From Orbicella franksi (taxonomy: Eukaryota), in contig OZ116709.1 of the NCBI GenBank assembly GCA_964199315.1, positions 12,834,001-12,898,000 of the forward strand: DNA of 64,000 bases, in the 5' to 3' direction. Position 1 is the first letter of the stretch. Every line of letters begins with the position of its first letter. Both the position numbers and the translations under genes were made by a program. The notes under the pieces were generated by a model. The model searched no databases. It worked only from the letters and a program-made list of their open reading frames with translations, and was not told the DNA's origin. This document shows, piece after piece, positions 1 through 43,800 of this stretch.

Positions 1-3000
1 GAACGCCATTCTCATCAGTATACTCTTCAACTTCCTCTTGTGGCTCGTCGTCGGATAGTGCAACAGGAAATTTAACTTCCGCTGGTTCGGTCCGTTGACC
101 TTCTCTTTTGATACTGGTTGTTGTAATGGTTCTCCTGACAATCCGCCTAACACGAACTCCGTTCTCATCAACATACTCCTCAACTTCTTCGGGTGATTCA
201 TCTTCCATTCCCTCGATTTCAGGAATAACTATTTCCCGATTCAAAGTTGCCGAAGGAACTCTCTCCATTACGTCATCGTGGTCAAGATCTTCCTTTAACT
301 CTGGTTTTGTTGACTGCGACGGCACAATTAAGAAAGAAATGTCTCCTGTAGGTTGTCTAGGTTCTTCTGATGCTGGTTCACTCTCCTCCATCCATTCAGG
401 AAGAACAACTTCACGTGTTTGCACTGAAGGAACAACATCATCAGAGTCAAAATAAACAGGAGCTGCTAACTCAAACATCTTTGCACCTGGACCGTCCTTT
501 GCTTCATCAACAGATGTACGGATTACACTTCTTGTTGTAATGGTTCGCCTCACAATTCTCCTCACACGAACGCCATTTTCGTCAATATATTCCTCGAAAT
601 CTTCTGGTGATTCATCTTCAGATGGTGTTAAAGGAAATTTAACTTCCACTGGTCCAACCTCGGCGCCTCCTCTTTTTTTTGTTGCCGTTGTAGCGATTCG
701 TTTAACAATTCTTCTCACCCGAACACCATTCTCATCAATATACTCCTCGACTTCCTCTGGACTTTCACCTTCTGATGATGCAACAGGAAATTTAACCTCC
801 ACTGGTTCAGTCCCTTCACTTTCTCTTTTAATACTGGTTGTCGTGATGGTTCTCCTGACAATCCGCCTCACCCGAGAACCGTTCTCATCAACAAATTCTT
901 CAACTTCTTCGGGTGATTCATCTTCCATTCCCTCGATTTCAGGCATAACTATTTCCCGATTCAAAGTTGTCGAGGTAACTCTCTCCATTTCGTCCTCGCG
1001 ATCAAGGTCTTCTTTTAACCCAGGTTCTTTAGGCTGAGAAGATAGAATTAAGAAAGAAATGTCATCTGTAGGCTGTCTCGGTTCTTCTGATCCTGGTTCA
1101 CTCTCCTCCATCCATTCAGGAAGGACAACTTCACGTGTTTGCACTGAGGGAACAACATCATCAGAGTCAAGGTAAACAGGAGCAGCTGACTCAAACATCT
1201 TTGCACCTGGTCCGTCCTTTGCTTCATCAACAGATGAACGGATTATACTTCTTGTTGTAATAGCTCGCCTCACAGTTCTCCTCACACGAACGCCATTTTC
1301 GTCAATATATTCCTCGAAATCTTCTGGTGATTCATCCTCAGATGGTGTTAAAGGAAATTTAACTTCCACTGGTCCAATCTCAGCGCCTTCTCTTTTTGTA
1401 GTTGCCGTTGTAACGATTCGTTTTACAATTCTTCTCACCCGAACACCATTCTCATCAATATACTCCTCGACTTCCTCTGGACTTTCACCGTCTGATAGTG
1501 CAACAGGAAATTTAACTTCTACTGGTTCAGTCCCTTGACCTTCTCTTTTGATACTGGTTGTGGTGATGGTTCTCCTGACAATCCGCCTCACCCGAGAACC
1601 GTTCTCATCAACATACTCTTCAACTTCTTCGGGTGATTCATCTTCCATTCCCTCGATTTCAGGCATAACTATTTCCCGATTCAAAGTTGTCGAGGTAACT
1701 CTCTCCATTACGTCCTCGGAATCAAGGTCTTCTTTTGACCCAGGTTCTTTAGGCTGAGAAGGCAGAATTAACAAAGAAATGTCTTCTGAAGGCTGTCTCG
1801 GTTCTTTTGATGCTGGTTCACTCTCCTCCATCCATTCAGGAAGGACAACTTCACGTGTTTGCACTGAAGGAACAACATCATCAGAGTCAAGATAAACAGG
1901 AGCTGCTGACTCAAACATCTTTGTACCTGGATCATCCTTCGCTTCATCAACAGATGTACGGATTATACCTCTTGTTGTAATGGTTCGCCTCACAATTCTC
2001 CTCACTCGAACGCCATTTTCGTCAATATATTCTTCGACTTCTTCTGGTGACTCGTCTTCGGATGGTGTAACAGGAAATTTGACTTCCACTGGTCCAATCC
2101 CCGGGCCTTCTCTTTTGATAGTTGCGGTTGTAATGGTTCGTTTTACAATTCTTCTCACCCGAACACCATTCTCATCAATATACTCCTCGACTTTCTCTGG
2201 ACTTTCACCGTCTGATGGTGCAACAGGAAATTTAACCTCCACTGGTTCAGTCCGTTGACCTTCTCTTTTGATACTGGTTGTGGTGATGGTTCTCCTGACA
2301 ATCCGCCTCACCCGAACGCCGTTCTCATCAACATACTCTTCAACTTCTTCGGGTGATTCATCTTCCATTCCCTCGATTTCAGGCATAACTATTTCCCGAT
2401 TCAAAGTTGTCGAGGTAACTCTCTCCATTACCTCCTCGGAGTCAAGGTCTTCTTTTGACCCAGGTTCTTTAGGCTGAGAAGGCAGAATCAAGAAAGAAAT
2501 GTCTTCTGAACGCTGTCCAGGTTCTTCTGATCCTGGTTCACTCTCCTCCATCCATTTAGGAAGGACAACTTCACGTGTTTGCACTGAAGGAACAACATCA
2601 TCAGAGTCAAGGTAAACAGGAGCTGCTGACTCAAACATCTTTGTACCTGGATCATCCTTCGCTTCATCAACAGATGTACGGATTATACTTCTTGTTGTAA
2701 TGGTTCGCCTCACAGTTCTTCTCACTCCAACACCATTTTCGTCAATATATTCTTCGACTTCTTCTGGTGACTCGTCTTCGGATGGTGTAACAGGAAATTT
2801 GACTTCCACTGGTCCAATCCCCGGGCCTTCTCTTTTGATAGTTGCGGTTGTAATGGTTCGTTTTACAATTCTTCTCACCCGAACACCATTCTCATCAATA
2901 TACTCCTCGACTTCCTCTGGACTTTCACCTTCTGATGATGCAACAGGAAATTTAACTTCTACTGGTTCAGTCCCTTGACCTTCTCTTTTGATACTGGTTG

Positions 3001-4240
3001 TGGTGATGGTTCTCCTGACAATCCGCCTCACCCGAGAACCGTTCTCATCAACATACTCTTCAACTTCTTCGGGTGATTCATCTTCCATTCCCTCGATTTC
3101 AGGCATAACTATTTCCCGATTCAAAGTTGTCGAGGTAACTCTCTCCATTACGTCCTCGGAATCAAGGTCTTCTTTTGACCCAGGTTCTTTAGGCTGAGAA
3201 GGCAGAATTAACAAAGAAATGTCTTCTGAAGGCTGTCTCGGTTCTTTTGATGCTGGTTCACTCTCCTCCATCCATTCAGGAAGAACAACTTCACGTGTTT
3301 GCACTGAAGGAACAACATCATCAGAGTCAAGATAAACAGGAGCTGCTGACTCAAACATCTTTGTACCTGGATCATCCTTCGCTTCATCAACAGATGTACG
3401 GATTACACTACTTGTTGTAATGGTTCGCCTCACAATTCTCCTCACACGAACACCATTTTCGTCAATATATTCTTCGACTTCTTCTGGTGACTCGTCTCCA
3501 GATGGTGTTACAGGAAATTTAACTTCCACTGGTCTAATCTCAGCGCCTTCTCTTTTGATAGTTGCCGTTGTAATGGTTCGTTTTACAATTCTTCTCACTC
3601 GAACACCATTCTCATCAATATACTCCTCGACTTCCTCTGGACTTTCACCTTCTGATGATGCAACAGGAAATTTAACCTCCACTGGTTCAGTCCCTTCACT
3701 TTCTCTTTTGATACTGGTTGTCGTGATGGTTCTCCTGACAATCCGCCTCACCCGAGCGCCGTTCTCATCAACATACTCTTCAACTTCTTCGGGTGATTCA
3801 TCTTCCATTCCCTCGATTTCAGGCATAACTATTTCCCTATTCAAAGTTGTCGAGGTAACTCTCTCCATTACGTCCTCGCGGTCAAGGTCTCCTTTTGACT
3901 GAGGTTCTCTTGGCTGGGACGGCAGAATTACGAAAGAAATGTCCTGTGTAGGTTGTCTCGGTTCTTCCGATGCTGGTTCACTCTCTTCCATCCATTCAGG
4001 AAGGACAACTTCACGTGTTTGCACTGAAGGAACAACATCATCAGAGTCAAGGTAAACAGGCGCCGCTGACTCAAACATCCTTGCACCTGGACCGTCGTTT
4101 GTTTCATCAACAGATGTACGAATTATACTTCTTGTTGTAATGGTTCGCCTCACAATTCTTCTCACACGAACACCATTTTCATCAACATATTCCTCGACGT
4201 CTTCTGGGGATTCGTGTTCTGATGGTGCCACAGGAAATTT
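1..4240. repeat. Coding tandem repeat, period 720 bp, about 5.9 copies in window; each unit is 153+153+414 bp
   Basis: Lines at 541, 1261, 1981, 2701, 3421 and 4141 align without indels; sub-repeat starts at 3421, 3574 and 3727. Confidence 0.97.
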
Positions 4241-6289
4241 CATCCTAGCCCTGGTAATCACCATTCTCTTCACCCGAACACCATTTTCATCAATATACTC
4301 TTCACTTTCTTCTGGTGACTCCTCTTCTGAGGGTACTACTGGAGACCTGATCTCCACCCGTTCAAGACCTTGATCTTCCCTTTTAATGGTTGTTGTTGTA
4401 ATGGTTCGCCTCACAATTCTCTTTATTCGAACACCATTTTCGTAAATATATTCTTCGACGTCTTCCGGCGATTCATCTTCTGATGGTACTACAGGAAATG
4501 TTACCTCGACGGGTTCAATTTGTCGAGCTTCTTTCTTAACAGTTTGATGTGGATCGTCCTTGACTTCATCAACCTCCATTGGTGCCTCGTTTTCAAAGGA
4601 CGAGCTTAGAACAGGGATTGTCACTTTTCTTTCAATGTTGATAAAAGACGCATCTTCTTTTATTTCAGGCCTTTCTTTAACCTGGGACACAGAGCTGGTA
4701 ATTCTTTTTGGATAATCTAAACCATCCGCTTTGAGAGGTTCTTCAGGTTTGTCAGGCACAACAACAAACCATTTGGGAACCCGTGGGTACCTTTTAACCT
4801 CGAGTACCACAATCTCTTCATTAAACTCGTCGGCTTCATCATCCTCTGATGTTTCATCATCTCCCTGTACATCGTCTATTTCCACTTGAGGGTCCGCATC
4901 ACGTTCCGTGGGGGGCGTAGGTGATGGTTCCTTGTGCGCCCGTTTTCGTGGTATCTCAGATATCTCGGACAGACCCTCTGGAGGTTCTATTCGTTTACGA
5001 TCGCGAATTTCTAGGCTTTCTTTGTCCTCTTCAAGATCCAGGAGGGATATTACAGGCCGGTGCCTTTCAACAACGGTTGCCGACAGTTCTTCGACGATGT
5101 CCGGTCTCTCAGGGATATGCACTGTCGGTAAAACGGGTTGACGTGGTTCTACCTGTATCGATGAGAGAGAAATCTCCTTTGGTGTTGAAGGTTTTTCTTT
5201 GACGGTTTCGAGCCACTCTGGGTAAGAAACATTTCTTTCTACTCTTGCAAGATTAAAATTTTCGTCTTGATCCATGGGTGGCTGATTATCCTCATGTATA
5301 GGCAATGATGCTGGTGACGGCAACTGAACAGTCACAGGTTGTACAGTTCTTTTCAACCGAGTCGTCAATGTGGTTTTGGTGAGCTTTTGTGTGCGACGAC
5401 CGTCGTCTGAGGTAAACGTGTGAATTCTTTCAGTTTCCTCGGGTCCTTCTCTAAGCTCGCGTTGACCATGATCTCCTGGTTTCAGGACAACTTTCACCGC
5501 CCCATCTCGCAACACCGTCTTGGGAGTAGTGGTAAAAGACGTCCGTACAACTCTTCTTACTCGCTGACCATTTTCGTCTGTGTACTCCTCTACGTCTTCT
5601 CCTGGCTCTGAAGGGACATCAACATCCATCTTCTGGGTGGGTAAACGACGCTCTGACCTGATTATTGTCTTGGTGGTCGTTACTTTAGAAATCCTCTTCA
5701 CCTGGCGACCTTCTTCATCAACGTATTCCTCGATAACTTCTTCGGGCTTCACTATCTTTCTTACTGAACGCTGCAAAGGAATACTCACCTCACTTGGTTC
5801 TTTCTCCAAGTAAACAGGTGCCGCTGATTCCTGCACGAGAGGTTGTCTACCACTGTCCTCCCCAGTCTCATCTTCATCTTCTTCGCTGTAATCTTCTTCA
5901 TCAGATGATCCTCCAAGAAGCGGTCTTCCCCACTCGAACACTGATTTACTTACTACAGCACCTTTCTCGCCTTGTTTAGTCTCTTGTTCGAGTTTGTGGG
6001 GGACTGGAATTTTAAAGCTTTCTATAGTGCCCTTTTTCACTGTGGTAACTCCAAAAGGAGACTTGTCCTCAATAGTTTTATCACCATCAGCGGTTCTTAA
6101 AGCAGACGTTCCTAATTCAAACGGTCTAGCAGATAGCTCTCCTTTGAATCTTGACCTTTCGTGAGTTTCTACGACTTGTGGCTCCGATTTAACTGATTTG
6201 GGAACCTCAAATCCTTCAATCTGACTCTTTTTTACTGTTGTGACCTTAAATGGTACGGTAGAATCGCCGTCTCCCTGAGGCTCATCTTC
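1..6289 (-). CDS. DST/MACF1: Giant exon, at least 2096 codons, acidic/Thr-rich with 240-aa tandem repeats, runs off the window
   Basis: Acceptor TTTCCTTGTATCTTTAG|GAA; no stop found in this frame on reading by eye; begins [21 protein letters not shown]. Confidence 0.9.
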
Positions 6290-9200
6290 CTAAAGATACA
6301 AGGAAATATCATGCATGTCATAAACGTACGAAAAGCTCCCAACAGCGCTCGTTAAGGTACGCACTTGACAGCTGATAGAGCGCCTCCTGCACTCCTGAGT
6401 TCTACATTCTTGCTTGGTTCTTCGGTTGGTGAGGGGACGAACTATTTAATCAGCTTTGTCTAGAGCTATTAATTAAATTAACATGTAGATGGGGTTTTTT
6501 AATAACAAGCAAAAGAGCAAATGCTGCGATAATTGTTGTTGAGAATACGTTCTCAACATTGAAGGTACTTGTCAATCAGTTGCCAAAATAAAATACGAAA
6601 TTCTTTGGAAACCCGTTAAGGTGGGCGGGGCCCAATTAAACATTCACAAGCAAGGCGATAAATCCTCCGAGAGCGAATAAATCATCTAGAATTATATTTT
6701 ACGAACATTTCCTAAGAAATGGTATGGGTTTAAATATAATGAAAATGTCAGAGCGCCACGCCAAGATCCTCGGAAGTTAGTAAAAACACTATCCTAGGTA
6801 ACAACATGTTTTACATCCTTTTCCAAGATTAAATTAATCTCTCAATGTAAATTTACGAGTCCGTGAGCACGTATTTTTCACAAGCAATACTGATGGGGCT
6901 GATATCGTCCTTGATTTCTAAGAGCCAAAGAACCACCAGAAGAAAAAACAACCTTCAATAAACAGCAAACAAAACCACCATCGATCGCTATTTGGGATTC
7001 CCGCGTTTCGAGCTAAAATTTCAAAACAAGTTTCCAAAAAACTAGTTGCCTTTAATGTTGAATTTTATACCTAAGATTTATGACTAAGAAATCAAAAGAA
7101 ATATTTGAAAGAAAGCAGTTTTTTCATATGATCAACTAGACATCACGAGGCTCGTCGAGTCATTTGATTTTGTCGTCGAACTGAGCGTGTATATCCACCA
7201 ATAAGAATCTGTTAAATGCCACTTCACATTGTGTGGAAGACCACGTCAATCAAATATTCAATTTGCGTTTGGTTTTTCAAATTTCCTTGAACTATATCGC
7301 TCGCGATATATAGCATCTTTGGTTCTGAACTAGGCGAAATTTCCAGCACAATGTGCAAGAATTCGTCTTGTTGAACTGATACACGAACTTTAAATTTTCG
7401 TCAGTGACAGAGTCGCATAAAAATCCGTTTTAGTCCGTTATGACCAAATTTGCATTTACACCAACAGAAAACAACTCATGCATTCAAAGTTATAATTCCA
7501 CTCGAAGGAGCCTTGCCACGTTGTTAGAATACATCTTCCCATTCTGCTTAAATCGAACAAATTAAAGCTTCAAAACGCTAAGCTAGCAAACAATTTGCAA
7601 GTAATAATAAATCAAACAGGATAGCCAAAGATTGGAAGAAGACTAACACGATATGAGACCAACGAATTTCAAAAAGTTAGGACAAATACGTTGCTCTTTC
7701 AGCGTCTTAATCAGAGAACAAGTTAAAGGTTCAACTTACATCTTTTCCTTGCTTCCTAAAGAAGCCAAAAACTCGAGCAACAGCGGAGGATATCGGATTC
7801 ATTTGGACGTTCTGTCCGCACGCCGTCGCCAAATAATCATTCACCCTTGAGACAGCAAGCGATTAGCATTGGAAGAGAGCCGCCAAATTCTCCCGAATTG
7901 TTCACGAAGAACTGTCGTATCGCGATATAGACTGTTCATTAACTGTCACCTATGACGAGACGAAAATGTCGCCAAAGCTTTCGAGATGGTCCAACACAAT
8001 AGGCAGAAATTCAGAGTCCCTTGAAATAACATTATAAAACAAATGAATTCAAGACCGAAAGCCGAGTTGCCAAGGTTAACACGTCACAGCAAAACCTGTC
8101 TGATATAGTCGTGCGGATGTGGCAAATTAACAAGTAAATTCTCGAAAATTTATCACTGTCTTGAGGTTATAATATTCTTTCCGCATTCAAAGCAACTACA
8201 AAAGAGAAATCACCCCACTCTAAAATCATAAAGCTGTATTCTTTGATTCAACGCCACCGAAAGAAAAAACAAAGACTATCCCTGGAGGCTATTTCAACGA
8301 CGATTTGTATAACAAAAAGAATGCCAGGCCTTCAATCAAAATGGGAAACCGTCCAACATGGGAAACCGGTCAGAGGGAAAGCAGACAACAGATCGAATTA
8401 GTGTTTAGGGCAACGCTTAGCTTAACTGTTAATTTTTACACATATTGTTAGTCGGAGTTAATTTACGGGGTTAAGGTTAGTTTTTGGTAAGGGTTAGAGT
8501 TAGCGTTACTATGCAATCTGTGTTTTACACTGAACGCATGCGTTACATAGCAATCCTTCAAGATTCGAATGTTCAAGATTCGCACCAAGAAGTCGGGAGC
8601 GTCACCCAAATGGCTACAAGCTGATGTTAGGTAGAATTTTACTAAACTGTACAAAAAAGTATTTACCTCATCCTGCAGTTCACCGTCACCAGGCTCCACA
8701 AACAGCGCGACTGTCACGTTATTTCTATGAGACACCACTTGGCATGCAGGCTACCTAACTGCTTCTCTCAAATGGTCACATAATGGAGCGTGAAGGTGTG
8801 CAGTGTGAAAAGTGAAGGCTGATGCGTGAAGCGTAAGCGTGACGCATGAAATGTGAATCGCGAAACACGAAGAGTGAGACTTATCACGTGAGGGCATGCG
8901 TACAATCTTTCCGGACTCACCTTGTCTCCAACGCGATTTCTGAGCTCCAGAAATCTGGTTTGTAGTTGGTCCCACTGGTTGTTGACTCCGTCCACCTTGT
9001 CTATAACAACACTTGGGTCTTGATCTGTATCCTGTAGATGGCGAACCACCTCCTGTCCAGTCTCATTCGTGTTCGCAAGCTGGTAATTAAGTCTGGTCAC
9101 CTCGAGATCTAAAGCCTTTGGAAAGACAAGGGAATGGTCAAGAGATATTGACCGAGTTTTGAGACTTAAAATGAAAACAATAAAAAGGGGTAAGGACTGT

Positions 9201-40800: not shown

Positions 40801-43800
40801 AATCTGTTCGTCGAATTTTCTTCACAATGCAAGGGTATATACCAAAAACACCTTCAGAAAAAGTCATCGACAAAAAAATTTATTTTGACGGTTAGAAAAT
40901 CTTAAAGCGGTTTTGGTAGTTCAAGAGGATTTTTCTTTTATAAAAACAAAAAAATCGTTTCATTTCTCTTCGCATCTACTTAATCCACGGATGAAAACGC
41001 TTGGTCAGCGGCAAGGTTGCATGGCAACATGAAGTATTAACACTAAGGCATGCTGGATAGCAATTTTATTTTCAAAAAAAGTCACTCTCTCTTATCGGCT
41101 GTAGCTGATTCGGAACTCACTTGTAACTCTTCTCTCGTACTTACCTTTGTTTCTCTTATCCAGGCCAGCATTGCATCTAACCGGTGTGACTTATCCCCAG
41201 TTCCCACCTCCATGTCGAATTTCATCTTCACCCGACTGCGGCCCTGGGGCGAGGCTCCGCTGTCGTTCGAGTCTATGAAGAAAACAAAAGTAAGAAACGT
41301 AACTTTCACCTTAGCACTTCTCCAAAAAATTCCAAAGCCGACATTTTGATAGTATCCCTGATTTGGTATCTTCTTTTCTTACCGTCATCTAATCCCTCTG
41401 CAGACATGATGCGAGCAACAGTTGTTCTAGTTTCTGTTGGGGTACCCCCTGATGAGCGGTAGGTTCTCTTAGTAATTGTAATGACTTTCCTTCTTGTCTT
41501 CACCCCCTCCTCGTCGGGATAATCTGAAGTAGGTGTTGTTTCCTCTGTGGACACAACAGTTTTCTCCACAGGTAACTCCAGTTTCATTTTCTTGCCGTCT
41601 GATGTGCTGAAAGTCTGGTAAGTGAGAACTTTAGTGGACCGTGTTTCCAGACGATCTTTCATCTCAGACCAGCGCCTCTCAATGGACTGAACTCTACAAA
41701 GAGACGGAATACACGGCAGCTTAAAGGAGCTCAGTCACGTTATTTTGAGTTATTTTGGCCACGTACAAAATTACCTTTAAATTAGAGGAAACCCAAAAAT
41801 AAAAGTTTACTAAGATAGAAACACAACAAAGAGATAATAATAAACCATAAAGGAACAAGGATGGTGCGCAAACTCTGACGTACATGTAGCTGCTCTAATG
41901 GCAGGTTAAAGAACGCTTAGTTTTTACTACAACAAAGCTTTCACGACGACCTGGTTTCGAATGATCTCAGATCTGTCTTTCCGTTTACACAGAAAGGATG
42001 AAACCGGGATAGAAGCTATTCAGTTTAGCCGAGAATCGTTAACTTCTAAAACCGAATTAAACAGGATTTTCTATGACTCCGAAACAAAATGCTATGTTCC
42101 CGGATGAATCACTGTTTTATCCTAGTAAGAATGTAATTGGTAAATTATCAATGTAAGATGTAATACATGTAAGTCAATATTTCCAAATTTAGTACATGTA
42201 GGATAACTTTGCAGTTTTTTTTACAAGTGTATGTTATGTACTGTGTTTTTGTCACCAATAAAAGTTTACAAAAGAAATCACTGTGTTGTTCAAATATGAA
42301 ACCCTTGTAGTTTAAACGTCTTACGAATCTGATTGTCCTAACGTCACTGGATCCGGAAACGTTTATTCTACCCTCAAGTTATTTAAGAAATCAAGTTGTG
42401 ATCAGCAACAATTGCTACAAGTTGAACGAGAAAACCTACATGTACTGCTATCGCTGAAGCCAAAGAGGAAACCAACGGTGATTGAAAAAGTAAAACTCGA
42501 TCGTAATTTTTACAAGTCTGAATTACCAAGTTGCCGGATATAGACTTTCTTCTCACTTACTTGATTCGGAGTTCATCTGCTCGGGAGTAGCGACCAGCAA
42601 TTAAGATGTCTACACCAGAGATCATGTGCTTGATACTGGACTCGAACATCTGCAGGAATTGTGTCAAAGACAATTAACAGAACGCGATCCACTGGTACCC
42701 ACAAGAACAGCAAGTTTAATTTTAACGATAGGGTACTTGTACTTTCAAAATAACGTTTACGATTGTAACAATCTACACTTTTGCACAAGGAAAATTCAAT
42801 CTACTTCCCGATGAAATGTTTTATACCCAACAGAACTTCTTTCGTTGAAATTTTGAGTCCTTTCCTTCATGTGTGTAATCATCCTACTCCAAAGCACAGT
42901 GACTGCCGGGGAGAAGGACATGAGGGATAAAAATACACTCCACTTACCACGAGGGACTTTTCAATCTGGTAGAAGTGTTTCCTTCGCGTATCGTTGTCAA
43001 TGGTATCACCAACTTCCTCTTCCTGTGATTAGGAACAAGTGAAAAGTGTAACTACGTACGAGTCAATTCATTGAACAAAATAAGGGAAGCGAGCAAACAA
43101 ATGAAAACCACGCCTATCAGCAAAAAGATATTCAACAGGTGAACATTAACACACACCCTGCCATTTCTGGAAAAAGTATTTTTTTTTTTTCAAAATTTCT
43201 GTTTATACAGCCCATTGCTTTAAGTTTGGTAATGAGGCACTCCCACGTTAGTTTTCATATGAGGGGTTCTGTGCTAATCAGATGAGATCTTTTGTTGTAT
43301 GCCTGTACAGTTTGCATAAATTCCGGGGTATAAATACATCTGTAACGTTCCGCATGAGTGGTGCGATGAATGGCTCGGGCTCCAATGCTTTCAGGCAAGA
43401 CATTTTCCTCCCACACTACCACTGCTATCCCAGGAGTATAACTATAAACGTTAGGACAAACTGACTGAATGCTCGGGAGAGACCTGCAAGGGAGCAAGTA
43501 TGCCATCCAAGGAGGAGTGGCAATTCTTAGCGTACAGGAAATATGGCCTGCTCCCAATTAGCCGGATTTTCAGATAGCCCGAGTGCGTCTACTTGACCTC
43601 GTTTCTCCCTCCTCTCAAGGAGTGAGAGTGAGTGACCTTAGACCGCTGGGAATCAGGCTAGCTCCCAGTGTGAGGCTCCATTCAGAAGGATGTTAGCAAT
43701 GTTCCTTGTGATACTGAGATCAGACCGGTTAGACGACGGAAATGAAGAGCGATCTTGGTCATTCAACCATAGCCCTTCTTCTTGATCCCGCTCATGACAA

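Follow-up and report, generated by a model that had tools for sequence, protein, structure and literature searches.

A conserved, previously undescribed repeat module in the giant exon of a coral spectraplakin

Introduction

Spectraplakins are the main linkers of actin, microtubules and membranes. In flies and vertebrates, an optional central giant exon of these genes encodes plakin repeats that bind intermediate filaments, and the optional plakin-repeat exon of bilaterian spectraplakins appears to lie at the same position as the coral exon described here. We analysed a window of 64,000 nt from the coral Orbicella franksi (GCA_964199315.1, OZ116709.1:12,834,001-12,898,000), in which a giant exon of a gene that we identify by homology as a spectraplakin encodes a tandem array of a short motif with an acidic and a basic half. 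Plectin repeats have been reported only for protostome and deuterostome spectraplakins (PMC9145010).

The second described system with which this array invites comparison is the OTBD of ankyrins (obscurin/titin-binding-related domain), made up of modules, of which the muscle-specific portion arose in vertebrates (PMC2942773). Current modelling of small ankyrin 1 casts its obscurin-binding segments, R64-K73 and K100-R108, as beta strands; the charged face of the resulting sheet binds obscurin and its hydrophobic face SERCA1, in a 2025 model that replaces the earlier one built on ankyrin repeats (PMC11927728). Obscurin binds ankyrin through sites placed towards its C-terminus, at aa 6,215-6,353 (PMC3575540). 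The OTBD of ankyrin-G is reported to bind plectin, a plakin, and filamin C.

Results

A giant spectraplakin exon encodes a tandem motif array

On the minus strand of the window, whose positions serve as coordinates throughout, a single frame (2-6289) stays open for 2,096 codons and continues past the window start. It begins directly after a splice acceptor at 6290/6289, where a polypyrimidine tract and an AG (6290-6291) read ...tatctttag and are followed at once by GAAGATGAG; 2-6289 is therefore a giant internal exon. Cys is absent from the encoded sequence, which is 16.7% E, 11.5% V, 8.9% R and 8.3% P and has a net charge of -201. Compared with a coral orthologue, the unique part of the exon shows a ratio of nonsynonymous to synonymous substitution rates (dN/dS) of 0.34 at a dS of 0.53. 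The long open frame, the acceptor and this ratio establish the array as real coding sequence, and the mechanically listed plus-strand open reading frames (ORFs) over the exon are shadows of the minus-strand frame.

The original prediction for this locus had counted about 22 copies of the motif, some 20 of them at 1-4480 and two divergent ones at about 5575 and 5715. Both a regular expression (EE[YF].[DY]E.G) and a profile built from cnidarian sequences bear this out. The former finds 22 copies in the exon, 21 complete and one cut at the window edge, with 20 of the 22 falling at 1-4486; the latter recovers the same 22, at 44-64 bits each and 19.8 bits for the edge-cut copy, and adds a degenerate copy at 5357-5440 (minus strand). 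The coordinates and quoted sequences of the two divergent copies (5516-5617 and 5654-5752) were also correct. In a six-frame translation of the rest of the window (~73,600 residues) there was no match to the regular expression and no profile score above 8 bits; the array stands far above chance. The features of the locus, all on the minus strand, are as follows.

2-6289, minus: giant coding exon of the spectraplakin gene (open frame, acceptor, dN/dS, composition)
4487-6289, minus: unique N-terminal part of the exon, with two divergent motif copies, one degenerate copy and a PEW motif (BLASTP against P0053, motif positions)
5654-5752, minus: divergent motif copy 1 (43.9 bits, cnidarian profile)
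5516-5617, minus: divergent motif copy 2 (47.2 bits, cnidarian profile)
4790-4819, minus: acidic motif in the unique part of the exon (motif positions)
4376-4486, 4232-4333 and 4115-4225, minus: three transitional copies directly upstream of the regular array (56.2, 45.2 and 63.6 bits)
236-3835, minus: five complete 720-bp units, each with three motif copies and a 138-residue spacer (spacing, DNA identity)
3116-3835, 2396-3115, 1676-2395, 956-1675 and 236-955, minus: boundaries of these five units (spacing)
3548-3658, minus: reference motif copy, row 1 of profile alignment A1, with acidic run, EEYIDE and NG turn (alignment, conservation)
2-235, minus: start of a sixth unit, with a complete copy at 101-208 and the edge-cut copy at 2-55 (63.0 and 19.8 bits)
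8909-53654, minus: upstream exons of the same gene, encoding the CH domains, plakin SH3 region and spectrin repeats (tblastn with P0026, residues 33-2452)

The regular array is preceded by a unique segment of ~600 residues, which holds the two divergent copies, and by the three transitional copies. Within the array, copies are spaced by 51, 51 and 138 residues, giving a super-repeat of 240 residues (720 bp) that is present five and a fraction times; Tandem Repeats Finder also detected a 153-bp sub-period. Since the five full units share 90-97% DNA identity with one another, the copy number reflects recent amplification or homogenisation, and the 22 copies cannot be taken as so many independent signs of conservation. 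What speaks for the importance of the motif is its occurrence in other species, not its copy number here.

The 138-residue spacer and the unique part of the exon hold two further conserved short motifs, each recurring once per super-repeat: FESAAPVYL (449-475, 1169-1195, 1889-1915, 2609-2635, 3329-3355, 4049-4075 and 5807-5833, minus strand) and LPEWMEE (from 386-403 to 5207-5224, minus strand). Both have counterparts among the relatives, Nematostella-like ones included; FESGEPVYLEEEP and VDLPDWL are examples. The exon thus seems to string together several conserved linear motifs rather than a single one.

The gene that hosts the array had been predicted to be a spectraplakin, and homology supports this. 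Residues 33-2452 of the Nematostella protein P0026, which carries CH, plakin SH3_10 and Spectrin domains, match collinearly along the minus strand from 53.6 kb to 8.9 kb (tblastn), and one exon of the window has a weak Spectrin match of its own. Because of this collinearity we identify the host as a spectraplakin, with the expected order of CH domains, plakin region with SH3, and spectrin rod; the C-terminal EF-hand and GAS2 parts fall beyond the window. A second Nematostella protein, P0022, has 20 motif copies followed by spectrin repeats. Like the bilaterian plakin-repeat exon, the array follows the regions for actin binding and plakin and precedes the spectrin rod. The coral exon differs from the latter in what it encodes: the plectin repeat profile had no match in its 2,096 residues (Pfam, E <= 1), and its product is predicted to be beta, unlike the helical plakin-repeat fold. 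One of the upstream spectraplakin exons (41309-41734, minus strand) holds a degenerate motif-like stretch that scores only 1.1 bits against the profile.

The motif is kept across corals and sea anemones

Word-indexed searches with the motif region returned cnidarian proteins only; one of them recovered 26 relatives, among them many corals, Montipora and Nematostella. For a more sensitive search we used profile A1, built exclusively from cnidarians (47 sequences, 37 columns), against 1.84 billion representative proteins, and obtained 48 proteins at E <= 0.001, 28 of which were at E <= 1e-10. The named matches belong to Nematostella, Montipora, Stylophora and one tunicate CAP-domain protein; the remainder come largely from coral-associated assemblies, among them a gene in which many exons bear the motif and which also has a 96-102-residue repeat. 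Across 46 non-redundant copies, Glu12 is conserved in 98%, Asp15 in 96%, Gly18 in 93%, Tyr or Phe at position 13 in 95%, and Arg24 in 85%. In these alignments the motif is conserved across anthozoans (Scleractinia and Actiniaria), and at detectable similarity the module is cnidarian-specific. No Pfam family, solved structure or published description of the motif was found.

The arrays themselves are far less constant. The super-repeat has 189 residues with two motifs in several corals (P0011, P0014, P0016, P0021), 240 residues with three motifs in O. franksi and close relatives, and ~269 residues in Nematostella P0022. That unit length varies by lineage while the motif is kept points to arrays that were repeatedly rebuilt, by independent re-expansion or by concerted evolution.

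The motif also appears in a separate setting outside the spectraplakin: a small coral paralogue family of ~480 residues (P0053/P0103, Stylophora XP_022790616; P0160, Montipora), annotated as 'myb-like protein V' or 'starmaker-like'. Its members start with a cluster of Cys residues (MKACLRWCCPCC) that may be a lipid anchor, and they carry the motif twice, together with PEW and an acidic motif, EEIVVLEV. P0053 aligns collinearly with the exon's unique part (BLASTP E 7e-15, ORF residues 189-516, window 4742-5725, minus strand). Of the 47 relatives found, every named one is from a coral.

On coral-associated contigs, one of which is a TARA metagenome scaffold, the related gene mentioned above (L002:9947-15659 and L003:7337-16182, both plus strand) spreads motif copies over several ORFs or exons and continues into its 96-102-residue repeat (PVEEFTDDQGRVVRVIIVRTIVTRTVIKN...) in which the basic strand is now largely hydrophobic. 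The only named non-cnidarian match is in the tunicate Clavelina lepadiformis (P0054, CAK8684015), a protein with two CAP domains; residues 80-116, in the inter-domain linker and followed by a Thr run, give one motif match of 39.5 bits (library E 1.4e-5). The match looks like an isolated linker motif, and the protein was rejected as a relative.

A predicted charge-paired hairpin

Each motif consists of an acidic strand with a net charge of -6, a near-invariant polar-Gly turn, and a basic, beta-branched strand with a net charge of +5, in which charged and aliphatic residues alternate. This pattern fits a hairpin with a two-residue turn, the shape that had originally been proposed for it. An AlphaFold2 model of the window's own 240-residue unit, based on 34 aligned repeats, places a hairpin at each copy, with a mean predicted local distance difference test score (pLDDT) of 38 and a predicted template modelling score (pTM) of 0.19; at these values the hairpin in this unit is a propensity only. 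The proposal fared better with a related, more hydrophobic array, P0031, which the profile matches at E 6.6e-52. Its model has a mean pLDDT of 66, with ~87 for the motif and hairpin residues and 70-87 for the core, and pairs strand 11-14 with the start of strand 20-36 before a long hairpin formed by 20-36 and 39-54. The P0031 prediction is a hairpin-based beta module of moderate model confidence. On these models, the hairpin reading is reasonable for the motif, and the coral version of the module is at most marginally stable.

Searches for described relatives of this fold and sequence returned little. Neither the exon nor the motif profile found anything in sequence searches of the PDB. In Pfam, the PTCB-BRCT and DUF3337 matches on the exon are sub-threshold or repeat-driven noise, as is the faint Alr2735 match behind PF27288, which is listed for many of the profile matches. 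The nearest named neighbour by protein language model is the Protein 4.1 C-terminal domain (PF05902), whose scores of 0.54-0.55 lie far under the threshold of 0.9 used for leads and which has no Pfam match at E <= 1; the resemblance is one of composition only. Together with Xin, C10orf71 and nebulin, the other language-model neighbours (scores <=0.68, no Pfam confirmation), it was rejected. Tyrosine phosphorylation as the point of the EEY sequence is also unlikely, because Nematostella mostly has Phe at that position.

Competing readings of the array

The motif would be the conserved core of a repeat module of ~50 residues. In it, an acidic strand and an aromatic residue lead into a D-E-x-G turn, after which come a long strand that is basic and beta-branched and, often, a short third strand (EPVEVKFP). 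Such a module, with little order by itself, could fold into a charge-paired beta-hairpin whose long strand presents Arg and Lys on one face and Val, Ile and Thr on the other. The array would then serve as a docking strip with many sites for a partner that is acidic or pairs strands, and many copies of that partner would be held along a flexible, strongly acidic linker. We infer that the window's own copies fold like the P0031 array and that the array has a binding partner. Multivalent docking of a partner by an array of charge-paired hairpins, each marginally stable, is the best-supported mechanism, and we give it a probability of roughly 40%. Several points weigh against it. A partner is neither known nor predicted; for the coral unit, the AlphaFold2 model is too unreliable to serve as evidence; the P0031 model has no similar fold in the PDB, AlphaFold DB or ESM Atlas (TM <0.4); and the abundance of E, V, R and P would suit an elastic linker just as well.

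That last point leads to the main rival, in which the array is chiefly mechanical: an entropic or salt-bridge spring like titin PEVK, with hairpins that open under load and re-form, making the spectraplakin extensible in contractile epithelial cells. The two sequences are alike in being long, built of repeats, rich in P, E and V with basic residues, mostly disordered, and part of a giant cytoskeletal protein. The Cys-free, highly charged composition given above, the predicted disorder of most of the exon, and the lineage differences in repeat number and unit length, expected if total length is what matters, all speak for a spring. However, a pure spring has no need of E12, D15, G18, the aromatic residue and R24, which are near-invariant across anthozoan orders, and it leaves unexplained a non-spectraplakin paralogue with only two copies. 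The coral module also differs from PEVK in its sharply conserved turn and strand pattern and its 240-residue super-repeat, and Pfam reveals no sequence relationship between them. An elastic role is possible, if on balance unlikely.

The original prediction went further than a hairpin and took the coral motif to be kin of the obscurin-binding motif of ankyrins. At the level of pattern the resemblance is real. In both, an acidic stretch with an aromatic residue precedes a D-E-x-G turn and a strand of alternating basic and aliphatic residues, and the surroundings are poorly ordered parts of proteins that link membrane and cytoskeleton. The ankyrin strings scored are those quoted in the original prediction, which are unverified and not database sequences. 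Scored as peptides without flanks, they obtain 22.8 and 14.5 bits with the cnidarian-only profile, with at most 1 in 20,000 shuffles as good, and the top score in a random proteome of 20,000 proteins was 11.3 bits. Placed in a protein of realistic length and judged at proteome scale, the ANK2/3-type string has E ~0.006-0.03, whereas the small-ankyrin string is not significant, with E ~0.3 in 155 residues and ~6 in 1,900 residues. A small ankyrin 1 sequence, likewise unverified, agrees with all residue numbers that two papers give (V29, L33, F35-L37, K38, H39, H41, K46, R64, V66, F71, K73, K100, K101, K105 and R108). In it, the obscurin-binding K100-R108 lies on the basic strand directly after the D-E-x-G turn. 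The beta sheet now modelled for that protein makes a good functional analogy for the alternating Arg/Val strand of the coral module, and plectin, the reported ligand of the ankyrin-G OTBD, would bring a plakin into the picture.

Against kinship stands, first, the search that had been proposed to reveal it: among the 48 profile matches at E <= 0.001, no recognisable ankyrin was present in those that were named or Pfam-scanned, formally the first of the refuting outcomes named with the prediction, although for a motif of ~20 residues such a search has low power. No Ank, ZU5 or Death domain was found by Pfam in the exon or in any profile match scanned; in place of the ANK-repeat, ZU5, UPA and death-domain architecture of OTBD hosts, the host is of the CH, SH3_10, Spectrin type, a spectraplakin and not an ankyrin. 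The coral exon has at least 22 tandem copies compared with one to three modules in ankyrins, the alignment requires one-residue gaps, and the similarity is borderline and was measured on the unverified strings. The charge pattern also matches easily by chance: a second, two-motif profile of the same family (A4) gave only chance matches in the PDB, one of 20 bits to a histone-fold protein (1f1e_A, E 0.003 in the PDB) and one to ferritin. The literature, moreover, treats the OTBD as a vertebrate acquisition (PMC2942773). We therefore regard homology to the OTBD as doubtful, a borderline lead and not a finding.

The same prediction named obscurin/titin-like Ig proteins as possible partners, and this part is not supported, because the ankyrin-binding region of obscurin is, we assume, non-modular and not an Ig domain. 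A version of the kinship that derives the cnidarian module and the OTBD of vertebrate ankyrins from a single beta-strand docking motif of pre-bilaterian age, multivalent first in spectraplakins and small lipid-anchored paralogues and later kept in ankyrin tails, is improbable.

Alternatively, the basic strands could be repeats that bind the microtubule or actin lattice, in the manner of tau or another microtubule-associated protein (MAP), with the acidic strand as an intramolecular inhibitor. The regular spacing of the basic segments, the charge complementarity of the two halves, and membership in a protein family that cross-links actin and microtubules would suit such a role. Each 240-residue unit, however, has a net charge of -26, which is unfavourable toward acidic filament surfaces, and Pfam shows no similarity to known filament-binding repeats, so that we think direct filament binding quite unlikely. 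Finally, the near-identity of the units in DNA could suggest a recently expanded, selectively neutral repeat without function, but with a frame open for 2,096 codons, a dN/dS of 0.34, and a motif kept in both Scleractinia and Actiniaria as well as in a separate paralogue, this is very improbable.

Discussion

Our analysis indicates that corals and sea anemones have, at the apparent position of the plakin-repeat exon, a different and undescribed repeat module, which they also use in a separate small protein. If the docking strip is real, it would represent a new multivalent interaction in early animal cytoskeletons. Should the module prove related to the obscurin-binding motif of ankyrins, an interaction of the muscle linker that is thought to be vertebrate-specific would be much older, and a shared pre-bilaterian origin would overturn the view of the OTBD as a vertebrate invention. 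Such an origin would also imply a conserved partner, possibly within the plakin family, given that the OTBD of ankyrin-G is reported to bind plectin. Both the docking reading and the ankyrin kinship can be tested directly in Nematostella.

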